DNA of 64,000 bases from sequence record KT895374.1; one strand, written 5' to 3'. Numbering within the stretch: the first letter of the stretch is position 1; the number at the start of each line of letters is the position of its first letter. Under the pieces are notes generated by a model. That model was not told the DNA's origin, made no database searches, and worked only from the letters and a program-made list of their open reading frames with translations. The translations under genes and the position numbers were made by a program. Below, one piece after another: positions 36,760-54,601 of the stretch.

Positions 36760-37377
36760 ATGGAAATAGAGGAAATTGAAAAAACTTTATTAGAGTACGA
36801 AATAACCCCTAACGAATGGTATCGAATTTCAAGAGATGAAAAATTATCCGAGGACTTTATGGAGAAATATCAAAATAAATTAAATTGGGAAAATATATTT
36901 ATACATCAAAAATTATCTGAAAAATTTATAGAAAGACATCAAGATAAAGTTAGCTGGGCTATAATTTCTTCTTGTCAAGAATTATCTGAAAAATTTATAG
37001 AAAAACATGCGGATAAATTAGATTTTCATTGTATTTCTATATATCAAAAATTATCGGAAGAATTCATCGAAAAATATCAAGATAAATTTTACTTTAGTAC
37101 TATATCTGACTATCAAAAATTATCTGAAAAATTTATAGAAAAACATGCGGATAAATTAAATTGGATTTCAATTACTAGGCGGCAAAAATTATCTCTTGAA
37201 TTTATAAAAAAACATCAAGATAAGGTGGATTGGTCTTATATTTCTCGATATAGAAAACTATCTGAAGATTTCATATTATCTTTCTGGGAAAAAATAGATC
37301 TAGATAAAGTGATAATTAATAAAAGAGCTGAAATTACTGAAAAAATTAAAGTTAAATACGGGTTATATAAATTATGA
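36760..37377 (+). CDS. Trp-repeat family protein (7 x 23-aa repeats)
   Basis: WxxIxxxQKLSExFIEKxxDKL units; tail KIKVKYGLYKL. Confidence 0.8.
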   Translation: MEIEEIEKTLLEYEITPNEWYRISRDEKLSEDFMEKYQNKLNWENIFIHQKLSEKFIERHQDKVSWAIISSCQELSEKFIEKHADKLDFHCISIYQKLSEEFIEKYQDKFYFSTISDYQKLSEKFIEKHADKLNWISITRRQKLSLEFIKKHQDKVDWSYISRYRKLSEDFILSFWEKIDLDKVIINKRAEITEKIKVKYGLYKL

Positions 37378-37477
37378 GTTCAGAAAAAGTTAAGACAATA
37401 TATAAATTAGATAAAATTTAGATAAGTTATTCGTATTTCAATATAATATTTTATATTATGGATTGGAGTCTATTTAG

Positions 37478-38005
37478 TTGAAAAATTTAATTTCTACTGT
37501 AGTCTTAAAGTTAAAATTATATTTTTTAAGTCTTAGCACAAAACCAGATGATGAAAATGTTTATTTATGGCAATTATTTACTGAAAGACTATTTCAACTT
37601 TTTATTGAGAATAAAATAAATTTTAATACAATTGTTAAATATAAAACTTATTTAAAATGGAATGAATCATATTTATTTGACAGAAAAAGATTCTACAATA
37701 AATTAACAAATGAAGAAATCAATTTATTAAGGGATAATAAAAATAATTTTCTAATAAATACTGTAGATCTATTGATTTTTAAATCGGATATAGATGATAA
37801 ACTTATATCTATGTGTAAACCAAATCATGTAGAATCATCATATAATAATTTTTTAATGTGGGAAAATATCAGCATTAATGGTAAATTATCAGAGAATTTT
37901 ATTAAAGAAAATATAAATTTTCTTCATAAAAAAGAGTTATTAAAAAATAAAAATATTAATCAAAATTCAAAAATAGTAACTCTTATTAAATTGGAGGACA
38001 TCTAA
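37478..38005 (+). CDS. Trp-repeat-related protein, tandem paralogue of 38005..38541
   Basis: WENISINGKLSENFIKEN; tail KIVTLIKLEDI. Confidence 0.75.
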   Translation: MKNLISTVVLKLKLYFLSLSTKPDDENVYLWQLFTERLFQLFIENKINFNTIVKYKTYLKWNESYLFDRKRFYNKLTNEEINLLRDNKNNFLINTVDLLIFKSDIDDKLISMCKPNHVESSYNNFLMWENISINGKLSENFIKENINFLHKKELLKNKNINQNSKIVTLIKLEDI

Positions 38006-38541
38006 TGAAAAATTTAATAACTATTACATTTTTAAGGTTTGAATTATTTTATCTAAAGTATCGTACTAAAGAAACAAATTATAACATGTATACTTATTTT
38101 AAATGGCTAAAGTTTACAAAAAAATTAGTAAGGCTATTTGTAAGAGATAAAATAAATTTTAACATATTTGTAAAATATAAATATTACTTGAGATGGTCAT
38201 CCAATAATCATTCATTTGATGAAATTAAATTCTATAATAAGTTAGGAAATGAGGAAATCAATCAATTACGAGATAATAAAGGAGAAATTCTGTTAGATAT
38301 TGAAAATCTATTAACTTTTAGAACAGATATAGATGAAGAACTTATATCCATGTGTAATTTAGAATATAATAAATATCCTGATAATCTTAGGATGTGGGTA
38401 AATATTAGTAGAAATGGTAAGTTATCGGAAAAATTTATTAAAGACAATGTAAGTTTTCTTCATAGAAAAGAGTTATTTAAGAATAAGAATATTGATCTAA
38501 ATTCAAAAGTAGTAACTCTCCTTAAATTGGAGGATATCTAA
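38005..38541 (+). CDS. Trp-repeat-related protein
   Basis: WVNISRNGKLSEKFIKDN; tail KVVTLLKLEDI. Confidence 0.75.
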   Translation: MKNLITITFLRFELFYLKYRTKETNYNMYTYFKWLKFTKKLVRLFVRDKINFNIFVKYKYYLRWSSNNHSFDEIKFYNKLGNEEINQLRDNKGEILLDIENLLTFRTDIDEELISMCNLEYNKYPDNLRMWVNISRNGKLSEKFIKDNVSFLHRKELFKNKNIDLNSKVVTLLKLEDI

Positions 38542-38870
38542 TGAGTAATTTTTCAAACTTTCCAAATTATGAATCATTGAAAGATAGAATAATGAGAGCT
38601 AGTGAAATTATAGAAACCAACCAGATGGAAGCTAAGGAGATTCTTACAAATGAAACATATATAGAAGACGGTGAAGAAATAACTAATATTCTTTCAATCA
38701 GAGGAGTCTTGAATTCCATATATAATCATAGAATTCAACTATTTCTTGAAATGAAAAATAGGGGTTCACAATTTGATTTAAAAGGTGATTTATATATGTC
38801 AATATTTGAGAAAGGAAGAACAATGTGTTTAGAAATATTAAAAGATGAAAATAATAGATTGCAAGTTTAG
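38541..38870 (+). CDS. hypothetical protein (109 aa)
   Basis: GGAGG RBS; coupled to the upstream stop. Confidence 0.7.
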   Translation: MSNFSNFPNYESLKDRIMRASEIIETNQMEAKEILTNETYIEDGEEITNILSIRGVLNSIYNHRIQLFLEMKNRGSQFDLKGDLYMSIFEKGRTMCLEILKDENNRLQV

Positions 38871-38888
38871 CAATCTATTATTTTTTTT

Positions 38889-41345
38889 TTAATAAGTTAT
38901 TTCTAGTTTATCAAAAATTACGTCTGATTGGTTTATTGTTTGGAAACCAATCTTACCCTTTAAAAATGGATCTTTATTATCGGTATACTCTACTAAGGGA
39001 AAACCACCTATTTTATCATAAACTCTTATTTTGTTATTAAATAATGTAATAAAGATTGACAGTTTATTGTTATTGTAGGTTTGTTTTGTAGATGCTAAAA
39101 ATTTACCCCTAATTTGAAGGCTTTTTCCCTTATCAATATTTATCTCTGAATAATCAGGAGATATTTTATATAAACCTGATAATAATATATCTTTCTCATC
39201 CTCAATAGAATTATCTCTCTTAATAGTATAGAGATAATATTCTTTTTCATTTTTATATCTAAATATAATAGAAATATTTCCTCTCTTATTTAAATCTTGA
39301 GGACTAATATTTAAAAAGATTCGATGATCTGTAAATTCTAAGTTACCATCATATACATAATTAGATACTCCATCTTTGTAACCAATAGTTGTAATAGAAT
39401 TATCTATCATCTTCCATTCTTTAGGACTATTAATTACTTTTAAATTCCTATAATCAGCATTTAATACTAGATAATTATCATTAGAATTTATTTCACAATA
39501 GATTTTAATAGATACATTTTGATTTAGATATTTATTATCTAAATTAAATTCTACTCTTTCTTCTCCTAAATTTTTTTCTGTAATATATTCATTATCAATT
39601 TCAAAACGAATATAATCTCCACTATTTGATTCTATTATTATCTTAGGATCAACAATAAATAAATTAGACTTTATAATTAATTGATTATTATCTAAATTAA
39701 ATTCAGAATATATATTACTAATGATATTTTGAATATTATTAAAATCTAATCCGTTCTTATAAATCTTAAATAAAAACTGTTCATGTTTATCATATATTTC
39801 AATTTCTGATGAATTGTCAATCTCATTTATTTTCATATCACTAACAGAATTAAAAATATTCCGATCTAATGATTTAAAAGTTTTACCACTATCATTAGAT
39901 TCCAATATACTAAAGTATGAATTAGGTTGCTCTACAGAATCATATCTGACTTTAATCTGATTCCATCCTTGTTTTAAATTAATTTTAAAATCCTTTAATC
40001 TTATAGGTTGAACCTCAAGAGATTTGATAGTGACTACACCTTTTCCTTTGGCTGGAAAATCTATATCTAATGATTTTATTTGAACTTTTCTTTTAATATT
40101 AACAGGTAAAGATATTTTTGTAAAATTACCATTATTATTGAAGTAAAATTTTTCACCATCATAACTATGTGTTTCTTCAGTATCATCCGAATAAATAACT
40201 TTAACTCTAGCACCTGAAAAATTTAAATCTGATTGGTAATTAGTTTTATATGTTGTTGAGATAACAATATCAAAATAACTCTTTAAATCAGATACATCAA
40301 TATTAACATTTGCAATATTTAAAAATTCTTCTTCATCTAATTCTTTAGTTAAATAATAATTTTCATCTTCTTCTATTAACTCACCATTAATAATTTCCCA
40401 TCCATCAGTATTACCTAATTTGAAATCTGAATTTTTACTTTGTGTTTCAAAAATATTTTCATTAATAGAAAAGTTATCACTTGTAGAGCTAAATAACAGT
40501 TTATCATCTAACCAAAATTTATTTTCTCCAAAAAACATTGGTTTGAAGACTAATTCTTTATCTTCTTTTGAATAAATAAAACCGTTAAATTCTTTTCTAA
40601 AATTCTTTTTATAACTTTCAGGTAGCCCAAAGTCACTTTCATTCAAAGCTAAATAGTCCGAGTATGTACTATTAGTTAAATTAGTAATACCCAAACCTGC
40701 ATCAATGATATCATATTCATCTAGTCTTATTTTACCATTAATTCGATAATCACCAATTTCTTTAAAATTTCCATCAAGACTATCCAAATTATCAGATTTC
40801 TTATCAGAAATCTTAGTTGGAGTTCTAGGTTTTATCTTCTTATTATAATCTTTTGATACAATTTTATTACTAGGGGAATTTAAATCTTTTAATAATTCTC
40901 TTTTAATTTCTTTTGGATTTTCATAATTAAACATTTCTTCTGACTCTTTTTCAATAATGTCATTAATAATATTAATGTAAGAAGGATCGAATAATTTAAT
41001 ATTTGAATAATTTAATTGTACTGGTTTCATAATATCATTAACAAATAATACAAGATACCATAAATCAGTTGTACCATAAACATCATAACTTACATATTCA
41101 GGTCGGTAAAATAAATCTTTACTAATTTGGTAATCAATTAGGTAATTCTTAATAATATGCTCATATTTCTTAAGTATATTTACACCAAAAACGATAGTAT
41201 CATCAATTTTATAATACTTACTACTATAATCTAAGGTTAATTTATTACCTTTGGCATGTAGTACTGATTCCATCATAGAAGCAAAACCAGCACTATATAT
41301 AGCATCATCACCTAAATCATAATAATTTTTATTATTGATATTCAT
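38889..41345 (-). CDS. baseplate wedge-like protein (T4 gp53/LysM-like N-terminus) with beta-sandwich domains
   Basis: YRPEYVSYDVYGTTDLWYLVLFVNDI; C-terminal KGKIGFQ...VIFDKLEI lectin-like end. Confidence 0.65.
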   Translation of the reverse strand: MNINNKNYYDLGDDAIYSAGFASMMESVLHAKGNKLTLDYSSKYYKIDDTIVFGVNILKKYEHIIKNYLIDYQISKDLFYRPEYVSYDVYGTTDLWYLVLFVNDIMKPVQLNYSNIKLFDPSYINIINDIIEKESEEMFNYENPKEIKRELLKDLNSPSNKIVSKDYNKKIKPRTPTKISDKKSDNLDSLDGNFKEIGDYRINGKIRLDEYDIIDAGLGITNLTNSTYSDYLALNESDFGLPESYKKNFRKEFNGFIYSKEDKELVFKPMFFGENKFWLDDKLLFSSTSDNFSINENIFETQSKNSDFKLGNTDGWEIINGELIEEDENYYLTKELDEEEFLNIANVNIDVSDLKSYFDIVISTTYKTNYQSDLNFSGARVKVIYSDDTEETHSYDGEKFYFNNNGNFTKISLPVNIKRKVQIKSLDIDFPAKGKGVVTIKSLEVQPIRLKDFKINLKQGWNQIKVRYDSVEQPNSYFSILESNDSGKTFKSLDRNIFNSVSDMKINEIDNSSEIEIYDKHEQFLFKIYKNGLDFNNIQNIISNIYSEFNLDNNQLIIKSNLFIVDPKIIIESNSGDYIRFEIDNEYITEKNLGEERVEFNLDNKYLNQNVSIKIYCEINSNDNYLVLNADYRNLKVINSPKEWKMIDNSITTIGYKDGVSNYVYDGNLEFTDHRIFLNISPQDLNKRGNISIIFRYKNEKEYYLYTIKRDNSIEDEKDILLSGLYKISPDYSEINIDKGKSLQIRGKFLASTKQTYNNNKLSIFITLFNNKIRVYDKIGGFPLVEYTDNKDPFLKGKIGFQTINQSDVIFDKLEITY

Positions 41346-41358
41346 AAGTAAAACTCAC

Positions 41359-41940
41359 CTATTTCTTTTTATATTTATCAATATTGGTTTTTATTTTTTG
41401 AAAATTAAAATATCTCTGTTTTGTATATTTATAATTTAAATTAGAAAACTTAAGATTCTCTTCCCAATTATCTTTTAAACATTCATCAATGTATTTGATT
41501 CTAGTAAAATCTAGCTCATGCTGTCTTAGTAAGGGAGATAATACTTTATCAGCCAATTGTTGACATAATCTATCTTCTAAAGTATTAATAGAAAAATCTT
41601 CGGATATTACAACTACAATACTATTCATATATTTATAATCAATAATACTCGCAGATACTAAATCTTCAACAAAATAACTTGGTTGAAAATCAGCCAAACC
41701 TTTATATATTACATAGTCACGCTCCATATATTCTACAAAATAATGACATGGTAATGCATCTTTTTTTAAATCATCAATAAAATAATTTTGCCAAGTACCC
41801 CATGTAAAACCATTATTACCTTGAATTACAAATGGATCAATATAGAATTTTTCCATCAGATTTCTAGCATGAGTAATAATTATATAATCGGTACGTCTTC
41901 TAATTCTTCTAAAGTTTCTTAAGATATACAAGTTATTCAC
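41359..41940 (-). CDS. degenerate amidase_2-fold protein in the baseplate cluster
   Basis: YIIITHA...PCHYFVE...NSIVVVI...F pattern; the C-terminal zinc-ligand His is not evident. Confidence 0.45.
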   Translation of the reverse strand: MNNLYILRNFRRIRRRTDYIIITHARNLMEKFYIDPFVIQGNNGFTWGTWQNYFIDDLKKDALPCHYFVEYMERDYVIYKGLADFQPSYFVEDLVSASIIDYKYMNSIVVVISEDFSINTLEDRLCQQLADKVLSPLLRQHELDFTRIKYIDECLKDNWEENLKFSNLNYKYTKQRYFNFQKIKTNIDKYKKK

Positions 41941-42430
41941 CTAACTTTTTAATATTTTCTTCACTAATAATTAATTTCTGTGATCCCACACCCAGAATAA
42001 ATTCTTTTTTATCTTTATTAAAACATAATGAAGCTTCTTTACTCTGATATATGACATCAATATTTTCTTGAGAAGGTTTATTATAAATTGAATTATTAAA
42101 AAAGAATGGTAATTGTGGATCACCATTAAAAAAGAATACTGTGACTTTACTTCCTATTTCTGGTTTGATTGATTGTGAATTAGTGCTAAATTGTTTACAC
42201 CATATCCCATTTAGAGTTTTAATAGATTTAATATTTTCTTTTCGATTAATGATATTTTTATTATTAATATTTTCATCATATTCCATAGGGTCTTCTTTTT
42301 TAGAACTTACATTAAGACCTTCTACGTAAATTAAAAATTTATCTTCTTTTCTATCTAGAACTATACCGTTAAATAAATTATCAAAACTAATATTATCAAA
42401 GGATTCGCTCTCAAAATTCATTAAATTCAT
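41933..42430 (-). CDS. baseplate hub/spike protein, gp5/VgrG-type OB fold
   Basis: FNGIVLD...IYVEGL...IWCK...PEIGSKVTVFFFNGDPQLP; start moved to ATG 42430 (GAGAGGA RBS). Confidence 0.7.
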   Translation of the reverse strand: MNLMNFESESFDNISFDNLFNGIVLDRKEDKFLIYVEGLNVSSKKEDPMEYDENINNKNIINRKENIKSIKTLNGIWCKQFSTNSQSIKPEIGSKVTVFFFNGDPQLPFFFNNSIYNKPSQENIDVIYQSKEASLCFNKDKKEFILGVGSQKLIISEENIKKLGE

Positions 42431-42454: not shown

Positions 42455-42478
42455 CAATAATAAAAAATAATTTAAATT

Positions 42479-42486
42479 TATATTAT
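42479..42486 (+). promoter_or_regulatory. early-type promoter heading the main Trp-repeat array
   Basis: TATATTAT-N6-G with G at 42493; back-to-back with a minus-strand late motif at 42443..42454. Confidence 0.65.
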
Positions 42487-42523
42487 AAAATTGATTATAG
42501 TAATAATGGAAGGAGAATATCTA

Positions 42524-43093
42524 ATGTCTTTTACAATTGGAGAAATTTTAGAGTCAGATTTAAATAATAAAAAAATAAAGAGTTTCTGGGAAAATATAAG
42601 AAATTATAATATTAGTGACGAATTCATAAATAAATATGATTATTATTTATTTTATATTGAAGAGTTCAGTCTCTATGATAATTATAATTTTTTACATAAA
42701 TATGGATTAAGGAAAGGAAAGATAAGAGAATATCAATTTTTAATACATTGGTGGGCAGGATCTAACTTAATTATAAAAATATTGGGTCAACCTAGAGCTA
42801 GATCATTTTTAGAAATATTTTTAGATGAGCATACACAAAAAAGAATTATAGAAAATGGCGGTATAGATGAGTTATTTTCGGGCAATTATACATTTCTTAA
42901 TGATGATAATGTATTATTCTTTAAAGATATTTTAGAGTCTCGTGATTTTTGGAAGTATTTTTCTGAAGAATATCCAATTAATTTTAAACTATATAAGGAA
43001 TTAGAGGATAAACTATTTATAAAATTAATGTTAAAAAATGAGTATATTAAGGATAAAAAACTTTTAAATGTATTAAAACTTATGAATTTGTAG
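42524..43093 (+). CDS. Trp-repeat-related protein (divergent)
   Basis: FWENIRNYNISDEFINKY; tail KLLNVLKLMNL; start moved to ATG 42524 (AAGGAG RBS). Confidence 0.7.
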   Translation: MSFTIGEILESDLNNKKIKSFWENIRNYNISDEFINKYDYYLFYIEEFSLYDNYNFLHKYGLRKGKIREYQFLIHWWAGSNLIIKILGQPRARSFLEIFLDEHTQKRIIENGGIDELFSGNYTFLNDDNVLFFKDILESRDFWKYFSEEYPINFKLYKELEDKLFIKLMLKNEYIKDKKLLNVLKLMNL

Positions 43094-43105: not shown

Positions 43106-43480
43106 ATGGATAATGTTTCTAATGAACTAATTGAATTATTGAAAAAATATGGTCGTGGTTATACATTATTTAAAGATGGGAGTATAGATACTGACTGGAC
43201 TTTGGTGAGTGAAATGCCACATTTAACTGAAGAAATTATCTTAACATATAGTGATAAGTTAAATTGGAGTCTACTATCTATACATCAAAGATTATCAGAA
43301 AACATCATTAGGAAATTTGATGATAAAATAGAATGGAATTTAGTATCTATGGACCAAGAACTATCAGAAGAACTAATAAAGGATTATTATCATAAAATAA
43401 ATTGGAATTTTTTAAGAATAAATAAAAATATTAAATGGAATAATAATATTGAAGCTCTAGAAAAAATGTCTAAATTATAG
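43106..43480 (+). CDS. Trp-repeat family protein
   Basis: Three 23-aa repeats; tail NIEALEKMSKL. Confidence 0.8.
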   Translation: MDNVSNELIELLKKYGRGYTLFKDGSIDTDWTLVSEMPHLTEEIILTYSDKLNWSLLSIHQRLSENIIRKFDDKIEWNLVSMDQELSEELIKDYYHKINWNFLRINKNIKWNNNIEALEKMSKL

Positions 43481-43490
43481 AGGTGTCAAT

Positions 43491-43829
43491 ATGAGTATAG
43501 AAGAGTTAGAGAATGAATTTAGAGATGAAATCAAAAACAATACATGGTCATCTATTTCATTTGATCAGAGACTATCTGAAGATTTCATCAAAAAATATAG
43601 AGATAAAGTAAACTGGCGTATTATTTCAATTTACCAAGAATTAACAGAAGATTTTATTGATTGCCATAAAGATAAAGTAAACTGGTATTATATTTCAATC
43701 CATCAAAAATTGTCAAAGGATTTTATAATTAAAAATAACGATAAAATAAATTGGAGAAATATTAAATATAATAACCATATTGACTTTGATGAAGAATTAG
43801 AAACTCTTTATCAATTACATGTAGTTTAG
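43491..43829 (+). CDS. Trp-repeat family protein
   Basis: Three repeats; tail ELETLYQLHVV. Confidence 0.8.
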   Translation: MSIEELENEFRDEIKNNTWSSISFDQRLSEDFIKKYRDKVNWRIISIYQELTEDFIDCHKDKVNWYYISIHQKLSKDFIIKNNDKINWRNIKYNNHIDFDEELETLYQLHVV

Positions 43830-43850: not shown

Positions 43851-44549
43851 ATGAATTTAGAAGTTCTAGAAAAAAAATTAAAACCCATGATTGAAGCAGA
43901 AAAATGGAATTCTATATCAGGATACAGTAATGGTTTATCAGAGGAATTCATAGAAAAATATGCTGATAAAATAGAATGGAATATATTATCCCAGACACAA
44001 AAATTGTCCGAATCGTTTATAGAAAAGCATTTATATAGATTCATTTCTTTAAAATTTTTAATTATGAAACAAAAATTGTCTGAATCTTTTATAGAAAAAC
44101 ATGTGGAATGTGAGATTTCAGAATATTGGATACTGGTTTTTCTTTATCAAAAAATTTCTGATAGATTTTCTAATAAATATGCAAGATATGTTAATTGGAA
44201 GAGAATATCAGGAATTTATAGTTTAAAAGAAGAATTTGTAGAACGATATAGCGATAAATTAAATTGGAAGAGAATGTCGATAAATCGTAAATTATCAGAA
44301 TCATTAATAGAACAATATTTGGATAAATTAGATTGTGAGCGTATATTAAAAGCTCGTAAATTATCAGAATCATTTATAGAAAAACATCAGGATAAATTAA
44401 ATTGGAGACTTATATCACTTTATCAAAAAATTTCAAAAGAATTTATAATTAGAAACAAAAATAAGATAGATTGGAAAATAATTGAGCATAACATCTATGT
44501 TAGCTTTGATGAAGAACTAGAGACTCTCTACAAATTATATGTAGTTTAG
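43851..44549 (+). CDS. Trp-repeat family protein
   Basis: About eight repeats; tail ELETLYKLYVV. Confidence 0.8.
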   Translation: MNLEVLEKKLKPMIEAEKWNSISGYSNGLSEEFIEKYADKIEWNILSQTQKLSESFIEKHLYRFISLKFLIMKQKLSESFIEKHVECEISEYWILVFLYQKISDRFSNKYARYVNWKRISGIYSLKEEFVERYSDKLNWKRMSINRKLSESLIEQYLDKLDCERILKARKLSESFIEKHQDKLNWRLISLYQKISKEFIIRNKNKIDWKIIEHNIYVSFDEELETLYKLYVV

Positions 44550-44569: not shown

Positions 44570-45409
44570 ATGATTATGTATTCAGAAGAAGAATTAAAAC
44601 TTTTGATTAAGGAGAATAGTTGGGGAATTATCTCAACGAGCGGACAAGAATTGTCCGAAGAATTTATGGAAAAATATGCAGATCATATTTGGTGGAATGA
44701 TTTATTAGATCATCAGGAAATACCAGAAAGGATTATTAAAAAATATGTAAAAAAATTTAATTTAAAAAAAATATTTATGGAAAAAAAGATGTCGGAATGG
44801 TTTATTGAGAAATATGCAAATCAAAAATATGGTCCTAATTATTGGAACGAAGTTTTTGTGTATCAAGAATTGTCCGAAGAATTTATTAAAAGACATATAT
44901 CTCATGTTAACTGGACTAAGTTAATAAAAGAACACTATGTTTCTGAAGAATTTATTGAGAAATATGCAGACAAAATAGATTTTAACAAAATTGCAGAATA
45001 TCAAAAATTGTCAGAGTCTTTTATTGAAAAATATAAAGATAGACTTAATTGGAAGGATATTATCGAACATCAGGAATTATCTGAAAGTTTTATTGAAAAA
45101 CATCAGGATAGACTAGAATGGCAATATATTTTTATTTATCAAAGATTATCTAAAGAATTTATCACCAAATACCAAGACAGGGTGGAAGATTGGAATTTAA
45201 TTTCATGGAATCAAAAATTGCCAGAAGAATTAATTATTAAGTATCAAGATAAGATTGATTGGCTTTGTATCTCTCAACAACAGGAATTGTCCGAAGAATT
45301 TATTGAAAAATATCACCATAAATTGAATTGGATAGCCCTAAAACGCTGTAATCCATATATTGAATTTAATGAAAAAATAGAATCTTACTATAAATTATAT
45401 ACGCTTTAA
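44570..45409 (+). CDS. Trp-repeat family protein
   Basis: About ten repeats; tail KIESYYKLYTL. Confidence 0.8.
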   Translation: MIMYSEEELKLLIKENSWGIISTSGQELSEEFMEKYADHIWWNDLLDHQEIPERIIKKYVKKFNLKKIFMEKKMSEWFIEKYANQKYGPNYWNEVFVYQELSEEFIKRHISHVNWTKLIKEHYVSEEFIEKYADKIDFNKIAEYQKLSESFIEKYKDRLNWKDIIEHQELSESFIEKHQDRLEWQYIFIYQRLSKEFITKYQDRVEDWNLISWNQKLPEELIIKYQDKIDWLCISQQQELSEEFIEKYHHKLNWIALKRCNPYIEFNEKIESYYKLYTL

Positions 45410-45431: not shown

Positions 45432-45830
45432 ATGAATTTAAGTAGAGAGATTTTTTTAAATGAGACAAGTAAAGTCAAAGATCTTTTTCCTGAAAAAATA
45501 ACTATTGAATTTGCTGAAGAAAATATTAAGGATAATCTTGATTGGGCATTTGTTTCAGGATATAGAGAGTTGTCTGAAGAATTTATTGAAAGGTTTTCTG
45601 ATAAAATTCGATGGGAATGGGTTGCTCATGGTACAAGAAATTTATCAGAACCATTTATTGAAAAATATAGTGATAAACTTAATTGGTTGCACATTAGTTC
45701 TGATCATAAATTATCGGAAAGCTTTATAATTAAACATCAAGAAAAAATTAAATGGACTTTTCTTAAAGATAATCAAAATATAGAATTTACTAAAAAACTA
45801 GAGACTCTATATAACTTATATGAAATATAA
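45432..45830 (+). CDS. Trp-repeat family protein
   Basis: Three to four repeats; tail KLETLYNLYEI. Confidence 0.8.
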   Translation: MNLSREIFLNETSKVKDLFPEKITIEFAEENIKDNLDWAFVSGYRELSEEFIERFSDKIRWEWVAHGTRNLSEPFIEKYSDKLNWLHISSDHKLSESFIIKHQEKIKWTFLKDNQNIEFTKKLETLYNLYEI

Positions 45831-45838: not shown

Positions 45839-46369
45839 GTGATAATTATGCACTTTAATGAATTTGAATTTACCACCCTCTATGGAGATAATAGAACTGT
45901 AGAGGAATTGGAGAATCATTTTAAAGATGAAATAAAAAAATCAAATTGGGATTTAATATCTAATAGTACCATTTTAAATGATTCATTTATTGAAAAATAT
46001 AAGGATAGGCTAAAATGGATTAATTTATGTATTAACCATAAGATAACAGAAGAATTCATTGAAAAATTTTATGAAGAAATCCATTGGAATATAATTTCAG
46101 CGGAGCAAAAATTGTCGGAATCAATTATAAATAGATATTCTAATGAACTTGACTGGAATTATCTAAGTACTTTTCAAAACATGTCTGAATCGTTTATTGA
46201 AAAAAATGCTGATAAAGTTAATTGGAGTGAAATAAGCTTATTTCAAAAATTGTCCGAAGCATTCATTGAAAAACATCAAGACAAAATTGATTGGAATGAA
46301 ATAGCAGATAATGAGAATATAATCCTTACAGATAAAATAAAAACCTTAATTAATTTACATAAGGTATAA
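45839..46369 (+). CDS. Trp-repeat family protein
   Basis: Five repeats; tail KIKTLINLHKV. Confidence 0.8.
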   Translation: MIIMHFNEFEFTTLYGDNRTVEELENHFKDEIKKSNWDLISNSTILNDSFIEKYKDRLKWINLCINHKITEEFIEKFYEEIHWNIISAEQKLSESIINRYSNELDWNYLSTFQNMSESFIEKNADKVNWSEISLFQKLSEAFIEKHQDKIDWNEIADNENIILTDKIKTLINLHKV

Positions 46370-46410
46370 ATTAAATTTATATTATATATGAGGGGTGAGA
46401 ATAATAATTT

Positions 46411-46983
46411 ATGAAAATAATAGAATACTTAAAAGATAATAAAGAATTCTGGGAAGGTATTAGTAAATATGATCTTTCTGATGAATTTATTAATAAATAT
46501 CAAGAATATTTAAATTGGTTAGAACCCGATTTTCTATTTTATTCTAAAGGTGCTTTTAATCCAAAACTTAAAAAAATAAAATTAATAGAAAAATATAAAT
46601 ATAAAATTTTATGGGATTATGATCTAATTTATATAACATTGTTAAAGAAGCATTATGAAAATGAATTTATAAAATCTGATAAAATTGTAGATTTTATAAA
46701 TTCTCTAGAACCTGTTTTTGGTAGAAACAAAAATTTTCTCATTTCTTCAGTTATAAGAAATGAAATATTATGGAACGATTATCATATATTAAACACTATT
46801 GAAAATATAGAGAAATATAAGGACTATATTTCATGGGAGGAATTTTGCAAATATTATCCTATTACTATTGAGATATTTAATAAATTTAAAGATGATTATT
46901 TAATGTTAAATTACTGTTTATTAGAAAATGATCAAATAACTGATGAAAAATTAAAAACAATGATTCGACTAAATAGTATTTAA
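46411..46983 (+). CDS. Trp-repeat-related protein (divergent)
   Basis: FWEGISKYDLSDEFINKY (cf. 42524..43093); tail KLKTMIRLNSI. Confidence 0.7.
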   Translation: MKIIEYLKDNKEFWEGISKYDLSDEFINKYQEYLNWLEPDFLFYSKGAFNPKLKKIKLIEKYKYKILWDYDLIYITLLKKHYENEFIKSDKIVDFINSLEPVFGRNKNFLISSVIRNEILWNDYHILNTIENIEKYKDYISWEEFCKYYPITIEIFNKFKDDYLMLNYCLLENDQITDEKLKTMIRLNSI

Positions 46984-46998: not shown

Positions 46999-47439
46999 TT
47001 GAACAGCCAGTACAGTCATAAAGAACTAAGCAAACAATCAAACTTATCATTTCTATTATTAAAAGAAATAATGAATGAAGAAATATCTACAAAAGAAGAT
47101 CAAATCTTTCTTTATGATAAACCCTTACGAGACAATGATGATAAAAAAATGTTAATATATAGTCTAAATTCTAAAAACATTAGGAGAAAGAATAAAAAAG
47201 AGTATTCGTGTTTTAACCCTTTTTTAAATAGTGATCACTTAGATTTAATGATTGACTTAATATATAAAAATGAAGAGGATATAGATTGTATTGAAATAGA
47301 GGAGGAAAGTGAAAATAAATATTCAATAAAAGTTAAAAATATAAGTAACAACATTATGAAAAAGGAAGAGTTTTATAATAATGAAAGTAAAAATAAATCT
47401 ATAATGAATATATTATTGAATTATTATGAAATAAATTAG
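46999..47439 (+). CDS. hypothetical protein (146 aa)
   Basis: AAGGAGG RBS; TTG start. Confidence 0.7.
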   Translation: MNSQYSHKELSKQSNLSFLLLKEIMNEEISTKEDQIFLYDKPLRDNDDKKMLIYSLNSKNIRRKNKKEYSCFNPFLNSDHLDLMIDLIYKNEEDIDCIEIEEESENKYSIKVKNISNNIMKKEEFYNNESKNKSIMNILLNYYEIN

Positions 47440-47450: not shown

Positions 47451-47936
47451 ATGTCTTTAGCTTCTTCACACTATCTCAATAAAATTGAAATGGATTTCAT
47501 TACACTATCTAAGACTTTAAAAAATTTGTATTCAGAAGATATAGATGTAATAAAATCTTTTTTAACATGGTTAAGAAGATATTATAAGAAAAGAGAATTA
47601 ATGTTCCATCAAGTTAATCTATCAATTGAAAAATTAAAGAATTATACATTAAAAATAAATAATGAAAATAAAGATCTTCATCCTTATATAAAATATGTAC
47701 CATTAGAATTTTGGAAAGAAGTTAGTTATTATAAACTTAGTAGCAAGGAATTAGAAGTATTTGCAGATGTTTTAGATTGGAAAATAATTTCATCAAACCG
47801 TCTCTTTTCATATGAAGAAATTATAAAATTTGAAAAATATATAGATATTGATATTTTAAAAAAGGATAATCTTCTCCTATTATTATTGAATGAAGATGAA
47901 AGATTAGAAACATATCTAGAACTCTATAGTTTATAG
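47451..47936 (+). CDS. Trp-repeat-related protein with a unique N-terminal domain
   Basis: FWKEVSYYKLS...LDWKIISS; tail RLETYLELYSL. Confidence 0.7.
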   Translation: MSLASSHYLNKIEMDFITLSKTLKNLYSEDIDVIKSFLTWLRRYYKKRELMFHQVNLSIEKLKNYTLKINNENKDLHPYIKYVPLEFWKEVSYYKLSSKELEVFADVLDWKIISSNRLFSYEEIIKFEKYIDIDILKKDNLLLLLLNEDERLETYLELYSL

Positions 47937-47948: not shown

Positions 47949-48455
47949 TTGCTTAATACTAAGTATGGACGTAGTAATATTGCCAATAAATATTTAATTA
48001 TGGAAAATTGTAAAATCTTAAAAAGAATAATAAGTGTTTTATCAAAGGATAATAAGACATCTAAAAAAATAAAAAAAGAAATAGAATGGTTATTTATAGA
48101 TACCTATATATTAAATAAATATTTTCGGACAGAAAAAGGTATTATGACTGAATCAATGGCAATAGCTTCCAATTTAGAAGAAATTAAAGAATCAGATGAA
48201 ATTGTTGAAAAAATTAGGAAGGTAGTTCCTAGATATTTGTGGAGAAGTTTACAAATAAAACTAGATGAAGAAGAGTTATTAATTTTTAAAGATGCTTTGT
48301 ATTGGGATGATCTAAGTCTTGATTATCCTTTTACAAGTAATTTTATCTATGAAAACAGGGATTTAATTAATTTTAATAATTTAAGTAAAAATATTAATAT
48401 GGTAAATCATCCTGATAATAAATTAAAAACTTTTATAAAGATAAATAACCTATAG
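47949..48455 (+). CDS. Trp-repeat-related protein with a unique N-terminal domain
   Basis: LYWDDLSLDYPFTSNFI; tail KLKTFIKINNL. Confidence 0.7.
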   Translation: MLNTKYGRSNIANKYLIMENCKILKRIISVLSKDNKTSKKIKKEIEWLFIDTYILNKYFRTEKGIMTESMAIASNLEEIKESDEIVEKIRKVVPRYLWRSLQIKLDEEELLIFKDALYWDDLSLDYPFTSNFIYENRDLINFNNLSKNINMVNHPDNKLKTFIKINNL

Positions 48456-48476: not shown

Positions 48477-48956
48477 ATGAACTTAGATAAACTATCTAAA
48501 GAGGATATCATCAATAAAATAAAAGAAACATTAAATGAAAGATTCCCCGATAGTAAATATTTAAATGATATTATTTTTCCTGCATTTAAGCAATATTTCA
48601 TTCAAGCATTAGGGTATGTTTCTCTTGAATCAAAATACTCTAATTCATTGAAAGTTATATTATCTTATTTATTAATAAATAAAGAAATAGAAGATGAAGC
48701 ATTAACTTTAAAAAAATTATTACCATCTAGCTTTTGGGATTTTATCTCTTACCAAGATAATCTACCTAATGGTTTTATAAGAGAATATAAAGATGTATTA
48801 AATTTTAAAATATTATCTCTTCATCATCATTTAACATGTGAATTTATTATTGAGTATAAAGATCTAATTAATTTCAATAATATTAAAACTAATTTAGTCA
48901 CTAAACAAAATAAAGATAAACGCATAAAAACCCTATTAAAATTATATGATGTATAA
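48477..48956 (+). CDS. Trp-repeat-related protein, paralogue of 48977..49516
   Basis: FPDSKYLNDIIFP; FWDFISYQDNLPNGFI; tail RIKTLLKLYDV. Confidence 0.72.
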   Translation: MNLDKLSKEDIINKIKETLNERFPDSKYLNDIIFPAFKQYFIQALGYVSLESKYSNSLKVILSYLLINKEIEDEALTLKKLLPSSFWDFISYQDNLPNGFIREYKDVLNFKILSLHHHLTCEFIIEYKDLINFNNIKTNLVTKQNKDKRIKTLLKLYDV

Positions 48957-48976: not shown

Positions 48977-49516
48977 ATGAAAAATACATGGCTTAAAAAT
49001 AAAATTAATGAAGATGAAAAAGAAATTGAAGAGATTTTATTATTAAAATTTCCTGATAGTCATATTTTAAAAGATATTATTCTTCCTAATTTTAACCAGA
49101 TGATTAAGGAACTAAAAATTATATTTACCAATTCTGAATATGGGTTCGCTAATTCTGCATATGGATCTTCTTTTTCCCCTCCACTTCGTAGTAATAATAA
49201 TTTAGAGCGTAATATTGGTTTTATATTGGAAAGATTAAAGGGTAATCTTAAAGTACAAGAAGAGCGTAGATTTTATGAAAAAGTGTTTATTGATCGGGTA
49301 TTTTGGAGAGTAGTATCAGGTACAAATGGGTTAAATGAAAGTTTTATAGAAGAATATAAAGAATTATTAGACTTAAATACTATCTCAAAGCATCAGGATC
49401 TATCATATGAATTTGTATTTAGAAATAAAGAAATACTTAATTTTGAATTACTAAGCAGAAATAAAAATATTAAAGATGGAAAGCTAAGAACATTTGTAGA
49501 AATAAATAATATATAA
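48977..49516 (+). CDS. Trp-repeat-related protein
   Basis: FPDSHILKDIILP; FWRVVSGTNGLNESFIEEY; tail KLRTFVEINNI. Confidence 0.72.
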   Translation: MKNTWLKNKINEDEKEIEEILLLKFPDSHILKDIILPNFNQMIKELKIIFTNSEYGFANSAYGSSFSPPLRSNNNLERNIGFILERLKGNLKVQEERRFYEKVFIDRVFWRVVSGTNGLNESFIEEYKELLDLNTISKHQDLSYEFVFRNKEILNFELLSRNKNIKDGKLRTFVEINNI

Positions 49517-49544
49517 AGTTAGCAAGAGATTATGGGGGATAAAT

Positions 49545-51084
49545 ATGATTATTACACCAACTGATAAGCAATCAAAAGCTATTAAGGATATTATTGCTTG
49601 GTATACAGGTAATGAATTTAATGGAAAAGATCCAAATAGAATTTTTACATTAAGTGGTTTAGCAGGATCGGGTAAAAGTTCCGTAGTTAAATTATTTATT
49701 GAGGAATTAGGATTAACAAATAATGAAGTTGCCTTTGCTGCTTATACGGGAATGGCAGCTAATGTTTTATTACAAAAAGGTAATACAGGTGCTACAACCA
49801 TTCATAAATTAATTTATGATACAGTACCGATAAAGAATGAGGAAACAGGAGAAATAGAAAAGTTTATACATCAATTAAAAGAAGAATTAGATAGAAAAGA
49901 AATTAAGTTAATAGTTATTGATGAAGTTTCAATGGTAAATGAGTCAATGTTGGAACAACTTAAAACCTTTGGTGTTAAAATTATTGCTATTGGTGATCCT
50001 GGTTTATAATAAAAGTTGGCTTGGATCTAAAAATACTTCTTTAATTGCTGGAAACTCCTTAGAACCTATTAAACTAAAACGTGATTGGTAACAATGAGCG
50101 TGAAAGTTAAAAATTAGTAGGATTGGACAATCAGCCGCTAAGTTCCTTTAATAAGGAGAAAGTTCAGAGACTATCAAAAACCTTTAGGTGAGTAGAGTAC
50201 ACTGTAAGCGTTGACAGTGGAAACAAGAAGCATCTTTAAAAGATGAAGATATAGTCCATTCTTATAGGAAACTATAAGCAGTTCATAAGAGAACGATATA
50301 AGTAGTAGCGCACTTATATGAATAAAATATGCAACTTCCACCAGTAAGTGGAGGTAATACACTTCTTAGAAATCCTGATGTATTCTTAGATGAAATACTA
50401 AGACAGGCATTAGATAATGAAATTATAAGACTATCTATGAAAGCTAGAAATGGAGAATATATTAATTTTGGAAGATATGGAAATGATGTAGTAGTAATTA
50501 GAAATAATCAGATTGAACCTGAAATGTTTATGTCAGCTGATCAGATCATTGCAGGAAGAAATGCAACAATTTCTGCATTAAATACTTATCATAGAAAGAA
50601 ACATCTAGGAATTAATGATCCTATGCCTATTGTTGGAGATAAAATTATTTGTCTAGATAATAATTGGAATTATGTATTAACAGAGGGGAATATTGAGATT
50701 TCCTTAGTAAATGGATCTATTGGAACAATTGAAGAAATGAGTAATCTACAGAGAGCTAGACTATACAACTTTACTTTTAAACCAAACTTTATGAAAGAGA
50801 AAGCATTTCATGATGTACATGTGGATAAAATTCCATTTATGCATGAAACTCTTCAGCAATCAATTAAACCAAAAGAACTTTATATTTATAGAAAGAAATT
50901 TATTGATGGAAATGGTATTAATAAATTCAATTATGGTTATGCTATAACATGCCATAAAAGTCAAGGATCAGAGTTTAATAACGTTTTACTTTTTAATGAA
51001 GTAATTAATAAGAGAATGCATCCTAGATGGTTGTATACAGCAATTACTAGAGCTAAAGAGAAATTAATTATTGTAAATGTATAG
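49545..51084 (+). CDS. RecD/Dda-like SF1B helicase, spliced (exons 49545..50003 and 50332..51084, 403 aa)
   Basis: GLAGSGKS, AAYTGMAA, VIDEVSMV, GDPG|QLPPV restored by splicing, YAITCHKSQGSEF, YTAITRAK. Confidence 0.9.
50004..50331 (+). ncRNA. group I intron (IA2-like), ORF-less, 328 nt
   Basis: Exon ends in U, intron ends in G; P AATTGCTGGAAA, Q AATCAGC, R TCAGAGACTA, S AAGATATAGTCC; P1 with a U-G pair; P10 AAGTTG/CAACTT. Confidence 0.92.
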
Positions 51085-51089
51085 CAATA

Positions 51090-51120: not shown

Positions 51121-51128
51121 TTTAAATA

Positions 51129-51782
51129 TTATTTAGAAAATACATGTCCGCCAATGCGATTGACTACTGTTAAGGACGCTTGCCAATGATTAGTTGCAAT
51201 TTTTGGATTATAAAAATATAAGGCATCAGTACCTTGACCCCTAGTATTTAGTGCCTGATCCGTAGCACGATATGATTCAGCTGTTGCAGATCTATTAATT
51301 GCACCATTAGTTACAGGAGAAAATTGCCCTCTTTGATAAATAACTCCTGTAATAGTATTGGGGAATTTTGGACTATCAACTCGATTTAATACAACTTTAG
51401 CTACCGCTACTTTTCCAGCATATGGTTCATTCTCAGCTTCAGCTCTAACAAGTTTAGCCAATAGTTCTCTTTCATTTTGAGCTACTGATGTATTTTTACT
51501 TTGAGACTTATATTCAGAAACTGATTGTTTTTTAACTTTTGAAACTTCTTTTTTTGTATATTGGGGAACTTTACCTTCTGGAATTTTAATTTTTTGATTG
51601 ACTAGGATAAGATCATCCCATTTATTGTTTTCTTTTCTAAGATCACTTAACGTAATATTATAAGTTCTACTAATACCCCAAAGAGTATCACCTTTTTTAA
51701 CATTATATAACGTTTCTGCTTGAGCAGATAATACAGGAACGCTTAGAAGAAATAATAATGTCAGCATTAAAACCTTTTTCAT
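51129..51782 (-). CDS. SleB/Hydrolase_2-type cell-wall hydrolase with signal peptide and LysM domain
   Basis: Signal peptide ending AQA; LysM YNVKKGDTLWGIS; LLAKLVRAEAENEPYAGKVAVAKVVLNRV...QFSPV. Confidence 0.88.
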   Translation of the reverse strand: MKKVLMLTLLFLLSVPVLSAQAETLYNVKKGDTLWGISRTYNITLSDLRKENNKWDDLILVNQKIKIPEGKVPQYTKKEVSKVKKQSVSEYKSQSKNTSVAQNERELLAKLVRAEAENEPYAGKVAVAKVVLNRVDSPKFPNTITGVIYQRGQFSPVTNGAINRSATAESYRATDQALNTRGQGTDALYFYNPKIATNHWQASLTVVNRIGGHVFSK

Positions 51783-51906
51783 ATTTCATTCATCCTTTCC
51801 TATTTATGATAGTATGTTTAATTTGACATATGTAAAAAGACCTATTTTTTCTTTTATTTAATAAATTCTCTTGTTTAATATAAAAATTTAGGAGGTACAT
51901 AGAAAA

Positions 51907-52077: not shown

Positions 52078-52896
52078 ATGAATACTTATGTCGTACCTAA
52101 TAAAATTGATTTTAAATTAATAGAAGAATATCCAAATTATATTGATTGGAGATATATTCTGGATACTAAAATGGATCAAGAGACATTTGATAGATTGTTA
52201 GACGATCATTTTACTAAACTAAAATTTAGTAACTTTGGGGCATTTACTAATACTGATTTATTGGTAAAAGAAAAAAATATACGCAAAATTATTAAAAAAA
52301 TATTAGATGAAAATAATTATAATAGATATTCAATGAGGTCTCTTATACTAAATATTGTTAAATACATCAGTATAGGTGACTTTATTCTTATCTTATCTCA
52401 TGGAAATTTGTTAGAAAATAAAAAAATTTATGAAATTTTATTCTCTGATATAATAAATAAATACAATGATATAAATTCTCTAAAAGCATTCTATTCCTTA
52501 ACTGAAAAATTACCTTACTTTTTACCTGTTAGAAATGGATGGGAAAATTTAATTAATCTTAATAATCGGGTAAATGAAGATGGTTATAATTACAACATTG
52601 ATGAAATATTGCTTAAAAATTCAGAAAAAATAGACTGGAATTATCTACTTCAATGTTATCGGCTAGATTTTTTCAAAAATGAAGAGATTTTATCATCCAT
52701 TCTAAAAAATAATGAATCAGGAAAAAAATATATTTGTAAAAATTATAAACTAACTAAGAAATTCATAATTAAGAATATAAATTATATAGATTTTATTTGT
52801 TTGAAAGATAATAAAAGGTTAGGCATTAAATGGTCTGAAGAAATGGAAAATGAGTATCAAAAACAGAAGGTAAGAGAAGAATTAAATAACCTGTAG
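52078..52896 (+). CDS. Trp-repeat-related protein (divergent)
   Basis: YIDWRYIL, KIDWNYLL, YKLTKKFIIKN. Confidence 0.65.
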   Translation: MNTYVVPNKIDFKLIEEYPNYIDWRYILDTKMDQETFDRLLDDHFTKLKFSNFGAFTNTDLLVKEKNIRKIIKKILDENNYNRYSMRSLILNIVKYISIGDFILILSHGNLLENKKIYEILFSDIINKYNDINSLKAFYSLTEKLPYFLPVRNGWENLINLNNRVNEDGYNYNIDEILLKNSEKIDWNYLLQCYRLDFFKNEEILSSILKNNESGKKYICKNYKLTKKFIIKNINYIDFICLKDNKRLGIKWSEEMENEYQKQKVREELNNL

Positions 52897-52909
52897 ATAG
52901 GGGAAGAAT

Positions 52910-53647
52910 ATGGAATTTCAAAAATTTTTAACTATTGATAAAATTAATTTAGAGTTTATAAAAAATAATGAAAAATATATTAAATGGGAAGAAATTATTT
53001 TACTGCAAATAGAACAAGATGCGCTCTATTATATTCTTAAAAATTATCAAAAAGAATTAAATCTATTTTCATATGCATATTATGGTAATAGTTATGATAA
53101 AAAGAATATAGACCATATTTTAAGTTTATTAAAAGATAATGATATGAAAATAAATCTCCTTTCAGGATTAATAAGTAAGAAAGGATTTACAAGAGATAAT
53201 ATAATAGATAGAGAATTTTTCATGAAATATAAAGATTTATTCTTTCAAACAAAATATATGAATTCATTTTTTAGTGGCAGTAGCAGGATTGATATCCAAT
53301 TTATTGAAGAAATTTATTCTTATATGACTGAAGAATATTGGGATTTCTTATCGTTTAATCCAAATATCGATAGAGAGTTTATAACATATTTCTCAAAGAA
53401 TCTTAATTGGAAATTTCTTTTAAAAAATCAAATAAAGAGTTTATTTAATGAAAAATTTATTGAAGAAAATTGTAAAAATTTTGGACCAAAAGAATGGAAA
53501 TATATATCAAGACACTTTAAGTTAACTAAACGATTTGTAGTAAAACATATAAAAGATCTATCAATGAGTGATTTAAAAGACAATGGATTAATAAAATTTG
53601 ATTGGACTAAAGAAATGAGAGCAAAATATAAATTAGAGGTGCTATAA
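52910..53647 (+). CDS. Trp-repeat-related protein (divergent)
   Basis: YWDFLSFNPNIDREFI, EWKYISRHFKLTKRFV; tail MRAKYKLEVL. Confidence 0.7.
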   Translation: MEFQKFLTIDKINLEFIKNNEKYIKWEEIILLQIEQDALYYILKNYQKELNLFSYAYYGNSYDKKNIDHILSLLKDNDMKINLLSGLISKKGFTRDNIIDREFFMKYKDLFFQTKYMNSFFSGSSRIDIQFIEEIYSYMTEEYWDFLSFNPNIDREFITYFSKNLNWKFLLKNQIKSLFNEKFIEENCKNFGPKEWKYISRHFKLTKRFVVKHIKDLSMSDLKDNGLIKFDWTKEMRAKYKLEVL

Positions 53648-54601
53648 TTGTCTAAAAAAAATTATTCTAATATTATAAGAATAGAAAAACATGAAATTGA
53701 TGAAGAGTTTATTCAAGACAATTATGATAGAATAAACTGGTGGTATCTTTCACAATCAGATATAAATTTTGATATATGTAAGCAATTTAAAGGTAAAATT
53801 AATTGGTCGGTGTATTTTGATCTTAATCGAAAATGGGTAAATGTTGAAAATGTAATAGAAGTTCAAAAATATATTGATTGGGAAGAATTTACTAGATCTT
53901 TTATTTATAATATAGATGATAAAATGATTCTTAAATTTAGAGATAAACTAGATATAAATTATTTGGTTGAAAAAAGGGAATTGAATACAAAATTAATTAA
54001 TGAAATTCAGGAATATGTTGATTGGAAAAAAATAGATAGTTTTGAAAAATTTAAAAATCTAAAATTAAGCACTATCGAAAAATATATAGCTCCTAACTAT
54101 TCAGAAGATGATTTTTTCTGGACTGAATTATGTTTGACTTATAAATTAACAGAAAAATTTATTAATAAACATATAAAAAAATTTAATATTGAAGATCTAA
54201 TGTTGAAACAAAATTTAGGGAAAAAATTTATTAAAGAAAATTTGGAAGAAATTAAAAAACATCCAGATTTTATACCATACTTATTTATAAACAATAAAAA
54301 ATTAGATTATGAAGTAATTCAATTGTTTGATATCATTGAAGAAAATCCTGAATCTTTTGTGAATACTTGTTTTTATAATATGCATTATGAACTACCATCA
54401 GAATTATTTATTAATAACCCTGAAGTTGTTAATGATATTTATGACCTTAAGAGTTTTTATACAAAATATAAATTTGATATGGACTCCCTTCATGCCATTA
54501 AAAAGGATATTGACAAAGAAAATTCAAAGTTATTATTTCAAAATAAATATATAAAAGGAGATAAGAACTTAAAAGCCTTCATTGATCTAAATTTATTATA
54601 G
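53648..54601 (+). CDS. Trp-repeat-related protein (divergent)
   Basis: INWWYLS, INWSVYF, IDWEEF, FWTELCLTYKLTEKFI; tail LKAFIDLNLL. Confidence 0.7.
   Translation: MSKKNYSNIIRIEKHEIDEEFIQDNYDRINWWYLSQSDINFDICKQFKGKINWSVYFDLNRKWVNVENVIEVQKYIDWEEFTRSFIYNIDDKMILKFRDKLDINYLVEKRELNTKLINEIQEYVDWKKIDSFEKFKNLKLSTIEKYIAPNYSEDDFFWTELCLTYKLTEKFINKHIKKFNIEDLMLKQNLGKKFIKENLEEIKKHPDFIPYLFINNKKLDYEVIQLFDIIEENPESFVNTCFYNMHYELPSELFINNPEVVNDIYDLKSFYTKYKFDMDSLHAIKKDIDKENSKLLFQNKYIKGDKNLKAFIDLNLL

Follow-up and report, generated by a model that had tools for sequence, protein, structure and literature searches.

The window considered here, i.e. the whole stretch of 64,000 nucleotides that was analysed, corresponds to nucleotides 1-64000 of KT895374.1, the record of Bacillus phage vB_BpuM-BpSp (BpSp). 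Between positions 36760 and 54601 it carries 18 genes for tryptophan (Trp)-repeat proteins, whose repeats, common C-terminal tail and paralogues elsewhere in the genome are the subject of this analysis. With a record of 255,569 bp, BpSp is an AR9/PBS1-like jumbo phage of the genus Takahashivirus with Bacillus pumilus as host. When the helicase encoded at 34954-36690 was used as tblastn query, BpSp itself was retrieved at 100% identity and identical coordinates, the nearest relatives being AR9 and PBS1 at 52%; the G+C content of the window is 22-35%. All 18 start coordinates proposed in an initial annotation, made from the letters alone, belong to genuine open reading frames (ORFs) of the + strand and match GenBank genes gp045-047, gp052-059, gp061-064 and gp069-071, seven of which are named '(putative) tryptophan repeat gene family protein' and the other 11 'hypothetical'.

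The genes and accompanying promoter motifs are listed below by coordinates in the window and strand. Repeat numbers refer to a hidden Markov model (HMM) built from the window's own repeats, 'cap' designates the predicted C-terminal capping unit to which the tail belongs, and tail residues are numbered backwards from the last one (-1).

36760..37377, + strand: gp045, seven repeats and cap (V for Thr-8); phrog_3532 9e-65, repeat HMM, phmmer cluster
37447..37466, + strand: variant AR9-type early-promoter motif upstream of gp046-048; motif match
37478..38005, + strand: gp046, own N-terminal part, one canonical repeat, cap; phrog_28532 1e-96
38005..38541, + strand: gp047, close paralogue of gp046, one canonical repeat, cap; repeat HMM, PHROG, phmmer cluster
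42474..42493, + strand: AR9-type early-promoter motif (13-mer, 6 nt, G) at the head of the gp052-058 unit; matches AR9 promoter
42524..43093, + strand: gp052, degenerate repeats and cap; phrog_3532 6e-11
43106..43480, + strand: gp053, three repeats and cap (A for Thr-8); repeat HMM, PHROG, phmmer cluster
43491..43829, + strand: gp054, three repeats and cap, 112 residues, modelled paralogue; repeat HMM, AlphaFold2 (predicted local distance difference test, pLDDT, 89), Foldseek
43851..44549, + strand: gp055, eight repeats and cap; repeat HMM, phmmer cluster
44570..45409, + strand: gp056, ten repeats and cap; PHROG, repeat HMM, phmmer cluster
45432..45830, + strand: gp057, three repeats and cap; repeat HMM, phmmer cluster
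45848..46369, + strand: gp058, 4-5 repeats and cap; repeat HMM; alternative GTG start at 45839, as in the initial annotation
46373..46392, + strand: AR9-type early-promoter motif at the head of gp059-064 and a helicase gene; motif match
46411..46983, + strand: gp059, degenerate repeats and cap; phrog_3532 5e-23
47451..47936, + strand: gp061, own N-terminal part, two degenerate repeats, cap; phrog_22019 2e-9
47949..48455, + strand: gp062, own N-terminal part, two degenerate repeats, cap; phrog_22019 3e-67
48477..48956, + strand: gp063, own N-terminal part, two repeats, cap; repeat HMM, PHROG, phmmer cluster
48977..49516, + strand: gp064, poorly modelled N-terminal part, two repeats, cap, second modelled paralogue; PHROG, phmmer cluster, model
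52078..52896, + strand: gp069, a long protein of degenerate repeats whose tail is the weakest; phrog_3532 3e-36
52910..53647, + strand: gp070, degenerate repeats, one canonical repeat, cap (A for Thr-8); repeat HMM, PHROG, phmmer cluster
53648..54601, + strand: gp071, degenerate repeats, one canonical repeat, cap; PHROG, repeat HMM, phmmer cluster

Extent of the family and anatomy of the repeat

To delineate the family, the genome beyond the window was read piecewise and an all-against-all phmmer comparison of the ORFs was made (E<1e-4, single linkage). All 18 window genes fall within one cluster and all match the linked PHROG families 3532, 22019, 28532 or 11920, with E-values down to 1e-102, gp061 being the only one to match phrog_22019 alone; these four PHROGs all bear annotations without function. 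The membership of about 18 paralogues proposed initially is thus confirmed and turns out to be an understatement, as the main cluster comprises 51 ORFs, all on the + strand and distributed over nine arrays across the BpSp genome, three in the window and the others at gp099-104, gp108-114, gp123-127, gp192-194, gp233-242 and gp305/307. A second cluster of six genes (gp166-169, gp172 and gp173; KT895374.1 123832-128107) is unlinked to the main family at this threshold, and its tail, E-E-N-x-T-K-L-[KR]-L-L-x-[ILV], closely resembles the main one. Taken together, these 57 genes represent about 18% of the 318 BpSp genes and, with 34 kb, 13.3% of the genome. Two BpSp subfamilies with other N-terminal parts are unmatched in any other phage record. 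One gene lying within an array, gp060 (46999-47439, + strand), was rejected as a member, as it belongs to PHROG 24572 and has no Trp repeats; its last residues recall the family tail only faintly.

Scans of the family proteins with Pfam and NCBIfam returned no meaningful family, and PADLOC defence models applied to six members gave a lone match of 22 bits without any matched stretch. The Trp-repeat family as such is already known by name and annotated on part of these genes, so that the initial statement that no system of this type had been characterised holds for function and fails for the family itself, named in GenBank for seven of the 18 genes; a literature search for functional work on the Trp-repeat family in phages found none. 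What appears to be undescribed in the searchable literature is how large the expansion in BpSp is, that the divergent 'hypothetical' genes belong to it, and how the cap is built.

The number of units of 23 residues per gene ranges from one to ten, in agreement with the initial estimate, except that some genes have degenerate units only: the HMM recognises seven units in gp045, three each in gp053, gp054 and gp057, eight in gp055, ten in gp056 and 4-5 in gp058, a single canonical repeat in each of gp046, gp047, gp070 and gp071, and exclusively degenerate units in gp052, gp059, gp061-064 and gp069. Column entropy computed over 29 ungapped repeats bears out the contrast noticed in the initial annotation between a constant scaffold and variable positions after the Trp. 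Position W1 is invariant, I4, S5, Q8, L10, S11, E12, F14, I15, K17 and K21 are conserved, and the most conserved scaffold positions have an entropy of <=1 bit, whereas positions 2, 3, 6, 7 and 19 are hypervariable (3.0-3.5 bits), with positions 13 and 16 at about 2.5 bits.

The common C-terminal tail

Aligned without gaps from the C-terminus, the paralogues share a consensus that reads [TSDN]-13, E/D, K/E/R, [LIV]-10, x, T-8, two hydrophobic residues, K-5, L/M-4, x, x, [LIV]-1, with 1.5-2.9 bits of information per column at positions -13, -11, -10, -8, -5, -4 and -1, as compared with 0.03-0.24 bits per column at the C-terminus of control ORFs (n=224). Thr-8 is conserved in 40 and Lys-5 in 37 of the 57 tails, the last residue is hydrophobic in all paralogues except one (56/57), and residue -13 is T, S, D or N in 52. 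The weaker tails in the window are those of gp069, which matches poorly, and of gp045, gp053 and gp070, where V or A replaces Thr-8.

A tail HMM built on the window members detected further copies in the genome, and all matches of at least 6 bits end 0-6 residues from the C-terminus, none being internal. In addition, a profile of the last repeat plus the tail matched 27 members from end to end, ten of them outside the set used to build it, all finishing 0-1 residue from the C-terminus. The tail is therefore strictly C-terminal whatever the repeat number or N-terminal part, as first claimed, gp069 being the poor match. Codons at the conserved residues differ synonymously, with ACT, ACA or ACC for Thr-8 and five different codons for Leu-4, which indicates that the constraint acts on the protein; a nucleotide-level element or a recent gene conversion is ruled out on this ground.

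Beyond BpSp, the best score of the tail HMM among 265 outside relatives was 4.7 bits, and most of these relatives end in other domains, so that this tail does not characterise the family as a whole. The weak matches that were obtained lie solely on the S-E-x-F-I-x-K helix of internal repeats, from which it follows that the tail helix is the counterpart of helix B of the repeat.

Predicted fold and nature of the tail

The protein encoded by gp054 was modelled by AlphaFold2 with six paralogous C-terminal segments as alignment, giving a pLDDT of 89 and a predicted template modelling score of 0.78. In this model each repeat is made of a short helix A starting from the Trp and a short helix B, and the unit containing the tail consists of helix A (residues 88-93), a loop (94-100) and a long last helix (101-111), the block having a pLDDT of 94. 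Residue -13 lies one position ahead of this predicted last helix; T, S, D and N are the usual N-cap residues of helices. For gp064 the N-terminal 105 residues are poorly predicted, and residues 107-177 are predicted confidently (pLDDT 77-89) with the same order of helices as in gp054, i.e. A-B-A-B-A-long B.

The tail is most likely the C-terminal capping unit of the solenoid in a dialect specific to BpSp, that is its predicted last helix rather than a separable docking peptide, and is best read as a diverged last repeat with an N-capped and lengthened helix. As regards recognition of the C-terminal peptide, by PDZ domains or tail-specific proteases or as a degron, the end is hydrophobic as given above, and the segment is predicted to be helical, with confidence, and not flexible. 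The autonomous docking peptide originally envisaged is thus not retained, considering that the tail is homologous to a repeat helix, is confidently predicted as the last solenoid helix in both gp054 and gp064, and has homologous caps in phage G, Listeria phage LPJP1 and metagenomic relatives, sometimes with residues beyond. No solved structure resembles the family: phmmer against the PDB gave a best E-value of 0.07, which is spurious, and Foldseek against the PDB, including solved solenoids of the HEAT, ARM, TPR and LRV types, a best E-value of 6 with template modelling (TM) scores <=0.18.

Relatives in phages and other viruses

A Foldseek search with the gp054 model against predicted viral structures (BFVD) yielded 50 matches at E <=1e-3, namely BpSp paralogues, phage G gp558-563 and proteins of five entomopoxviruses, Marseillevirus, Pithovirus, Orpheovirus and Solumvirus, with TM scores of 0.7-0.86 to the named entomopoxvirus, phage G and giant-virus proteins. 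Among them are ten entomopoxvirus proteins (E 4e-9 to 2e-4, probability 1.0), nine of which bear the family name, the tenth being AMV029. According to Foldseek, the entomopoxvirus 'tryptophan repeat gene family', with members from the Melanoplus sanguinipes, Amsacta moorei, Choristoneura biennis, Mythimna separata and Adoxophyes honmai viruses, possesses the same repeat of 23 residues and the same predicted fold, at 24-47% identity and, for eight of the ten named matches, TM scores of 0.68-0.80. As in BpSp, these viruses harbour many copies per genome; BpSp differs by its bacterial host, its 57 copies and its short cap, whereas one Amsacta moorei entomopoxvirus member has been reported with an F-box (PMC7728225).

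At the sequence level, a profile search of 1.84 billion representatives retrieved 5791 clusters (50% identity) at E <=1e-3, 1683 of them at E <=1e-10, almost always through the repeat part only. Although Pfam offers no model of the family, no structure of a member has been solved and no function has been assigned, its clusters number in the thousands, spread over phages, poxviruses of insects, giant viruses and the chromosomes of some Bacillota. The phage records with the repeat are those of BpSp, LPJP1, phage G, Clostridium phage c-st and one other Bacillus phage, and tblastn searches for the repeat in AR9 and PBS1 gave no match. A chromosome of Planococcus carries a single-copy homologue amid metabolic genes.

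Close parallels are found in the jumbo phages of Bacillota, where phage G (gp556-563) and LPJP1 (PHROG 3532 and 11920) have tandem arrays of repeat genes with a homologous cap. In phage G six tandem paralogues end in a homologous unit (Asn, [IL]-S-x-E-L, amphipathic helix) followed by 0-12 residues, and in LPJP1 five paralogues end in their own version, which keeps an L-S-x-E-F signature. Each phage has its own cap consensus, and both arrays are smaller than the BpSp expansion, with six or seven genes in the stretches read. Similar cap units terminate the metagenomic relatives P0204, P0202, P0208 and P0259. About half of the outside relatives run on for 81-150 residues past the last repeat, commonly into a beta-rich domain in the first 120 examined; the metagenomic relative P0070 ends in a RING finger and some others carry an N-terminal DUF7666. 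Of note, many metagenomic relatives (P0001-type; 64.5-kb metagenome contig L012) combine repeats with a C-terminal domain that is beta-rich, conserved and unmatched in Pfam.

In terms of multiplication of a small domain, the zinc-ribbon family of phage G, with about 35 copies (PMC7824862), is comparable, as one domain without assigned function is multiplied tens of times in a jumbo phage; it differs by its fold and the BpSp expansion occupies a larger share of the genome, i.e. 18% of the genes. BpSp represents an extreme case, since expansions of such size typify the host-range and immune-evasion families of large eukaryotic viruses and are rare in phages.

Transcriptional organization

In AR9 the consensus of early promoters consists of a 13-mer, six bases and a G start (PMC5312081), of which the BpSp genome has 19 exact copies and 31 sites fitting a relaxed form. 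The 13-mer of the motif at 42474 is identical to that of the annotated AR9 early promoter upstream of g013, in a syntenic place, as both phages share the gene order of a helicase, a few small genes, a minus-strand baseplate block, an early promoter, small genes and a RecD-like helicase. The motif at 37447 departs from the AR9 consensus in its first bases, which makes its activity uncertain. Gaps between the genes are mostly of 10-22 nt and contain a ribosome-binding site only, so that the genes form operons. By analogy with AR9, early units probably comprise 12 of the 18 genes, a number that rises to 14 if the variant motif at 37447 is active; the initial view that most genes sit behind early-type promoters hence stands at the operon level, two or three motifs serving 12-14 of the 18, and does not stand as one promoter per gene.

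A possible role as early and diversified binding proteins

We propose, with a probability of roughly 0.55, that the phage Trp-repeat solenoids are early, diversified binding proteins with a C-terminal cap. The proteins would be small, soluble, all-alpha solenoids of 23-residue units, with helix A running from the Trp and helix B corresponding to the LSE-x-FI part. The cap would begin with a last helix A, continue with a loop in which one Asn is near-invariant and finish with an N-capped helix B that reaches the carboxy-terminus and closes the hydrophobic core, keeping a short solenoid folded. The family would have grown by tandem duplication in accessory early-gene slots of an AR9-like genome, with turnover between related phages, and most copies would be transcribed as operons from early promoters of the virion RNA polymerase. 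The faces predicted to be exposed, namely positions 2, 3, 6 and 7 on helix A and positions 13, 16 and 19 on helix B and the loop, differ between repeats and between paralogues, and each protein would consequently offer a binding surface of its own. Soon after infection, such proteins may act stoichiometrically by binding differing host or defence proteins, thereby blocking or redirecting them.

That these proteins act by binding, and that their targets are host or defence proteins, is inferred. An arms race fits the presence of 57 genes in BpSp, the arrays of LPJP1 and phage G, the lack of tblastn matches in AR9 and PBS1 and the existence of subfamilies unique to BpSp. The RING and F-box fusions met in viruses of eukaryotes further indicate that the repeat array can act as a recognition module. 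Small members with good predictions, e.g. gp054 with its 112 residues, would suit a first structure, and the variable positions, being well defined, show where the search for targets can start.

Several points weigh against this proposal. We know of no binding partner for any family member in any organism. The scan for AR9-type motifs found no early motif upstream of gp045 or of gp069-071, and early expression in BpSp itself is extrapolated from a relative. Besides, the counterparts of Thr-8 and Lys-5 in the internal repeats are positions 16 and 19, which are free to change there; that both residues are conserved in the tail is not obviously required of a plain cap. Finally, about 55 of the 57 BpSp paralogues stop at exactly the same point of the tail, a stricter rule than in phage G.

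These last features are those that speak for another organization, in which a constant C-terminal module, i.e. the tail and perhaps the last one or two repeats, would dock all paralogues on one partner, for instance a protease, a chaperone or a phage assembly, to which the variable part of each would bring a different target. Such a common hub, which we regard as unlikely, would account for the conservation of the tail on two faces of the helix, which extends to Thr-8 and Lys-5, whose counterparts in internal repeats are exposed and hypervariable, for the end fixed to the residue with its hydrophobic last residue, and for the retention of the tail where the repeats are barely recognisable; relatives in viruses of eukaryotes also fuse the repeat to ubiquitin-ligase modules (RING in P0070; F-box reported for one entomopoxvirus member, PMC7728225), so that the array can provide the half of an adaptor that recognises the target. 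It is opposed by the homology of the tail to a repeat helix predicted as part of the fold, by the tolerance of phage G paralogues for up to 12 residues after the tail, by a length of 13 residues, too few for an independent domain, and by the outcome of Pfam, NCBIfam and PADLOC searches, none of which finds a domain in the tail. Nor did a partner emerge: the initial annotation had suggested a protease, a phage scaffold or the virion as hub, and no candidate was found. The neighbouring gp083 (61812-63011, + strand) and gp084 (63029-64000, + strand), encoding a MoxR-like AAA_5 ATPase and a DUF2201 putative metallopeptidase, were considered as a protease hub and rejected, as they show no link to the family.

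Even more doubtful is the specific version in which the last repeats and the tail form a constant docking module, where Thr-8, Lys-5 and the carboxylate, probably exposed, would hold some 57 different early proteins on one machine of the phage or the host. If true, it would be the bacterial-virus counterpart of the poxviral repeat-plus-F-box adaptors, built from the entomopoxvirus repeat. The comparison with poxviral adaptors drawn at the outset is closer than it first seemed, in that entomopoxviruses carry the same repeat family according to Foldseek, one member being reported with an F-box, and one metagenomic relative ends in a RING finger. By analogy only, the poxviral ankyrin/PRANC adaptors also form a multigene family of a large DNA virus in which a variable repeat surface is combined with a constant C-terminal element. 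Unlike them, the 18 window proteins gave no ankyrin, PRANC or F-box in Pfam scans, and the constant element of BpSp is a single helix of about 11 residues homologous to the repeat. The bacterial host is not known to have an SCF ubiquitin ligase. As the tail is in all likelihood an ordinary capping helix, the finding in its original form is of less interest.

A location in the virion, as internal head proteins, ejected proteins or other assembly components with the tail serving as packaging or processing signal, is very improbable: the family is a large paralogous one in a jumbo phage, paralogous families of such virion proteins occur in other jumbo phages and the region includes baseplate genes (38889-42421, - strand), but all 57 genes lie on the + strand in blocks of early and replication genes, many after AR9-type early motifs. 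The baseplate genes occupy the opposite strand, and AR9 has kept them with no Trp-repeat genes beside them; moreover, tblastn found the family in neither AR9 nor PBS1, which have similarly built virions. Equally remote is a modular binding of nucleic acids, in which each repeat would read a base or base step, as in other helical repeat proteins with a residue code, and the arrays would serve as early regulators of RNA or DNA, whether of the phage or of the host. The regular period of 23 residues, the concentration of nearly all variation at a few fixed positions per repeat and the ten basic members (isoelectric point, pI, >8.5) are outweighed by the acidity of most of the 57 members (median pI 6.0, with 34 below 6.5), by the net charge of -6 to -13 of the long canonical arrays and by the lack of likeness, in sequence or fold, to known nucleic-acid-binding repeats.

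Other features of the region

Upstream, gp045 comes after helicase gene gp044 and a hairpin. At 38847-38885, a 16-bp AT-rich hairpin that is terminator-like on both strands separates the convergent genes gp048 and gp049, the latter for a baseplate wedge protein. Between two arrays of the family and on the opposite strand, gp067 (51129-51782, - strand) encodes a SleB-like cell-wall hydrolase (Hydrolase_2) with LysM, whose hydrophobic N-terminus may be a signal peptide; an early-like motif with one mismatch lies upstream at 51884-51868.

Two group I introns (RF00028) were found in the window. The first (49967-50278, + strand; 79 bits, E 1e-20), located between gp065 (49545-50009) and gp066 (50329-51084), splits a RecD/Pif1-like helicase gene, the halves of which are separate hypothetical proteins in GenBank; its AR9 counterpart, g016, is a single gene. 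The second (58127-58388, + strand; 64.5 bits, E 3e-16) lies between gp077 (56625-58166) and gp078 (58437-59219), annotated as 'DNA topoisomerase' and 'DNA-gyrase B-subunit', which are probably one split gene. Both introns were detected in Rfam scans of 400-550 bases and neither in scans of the whole 64-kb window, at both thresholds, so that further introns may hide in the window.

A separate cluster of five paralogues includes three genes of the window (56110-56625, 60826-61284 and 61285-61617) and a stretch at KT895374.1 237258-239305. The pair lying outside the window has in common a basic C-terminus, K-K-Y-N-L-K-Y, and one of these two is annotated as a TPR protein.

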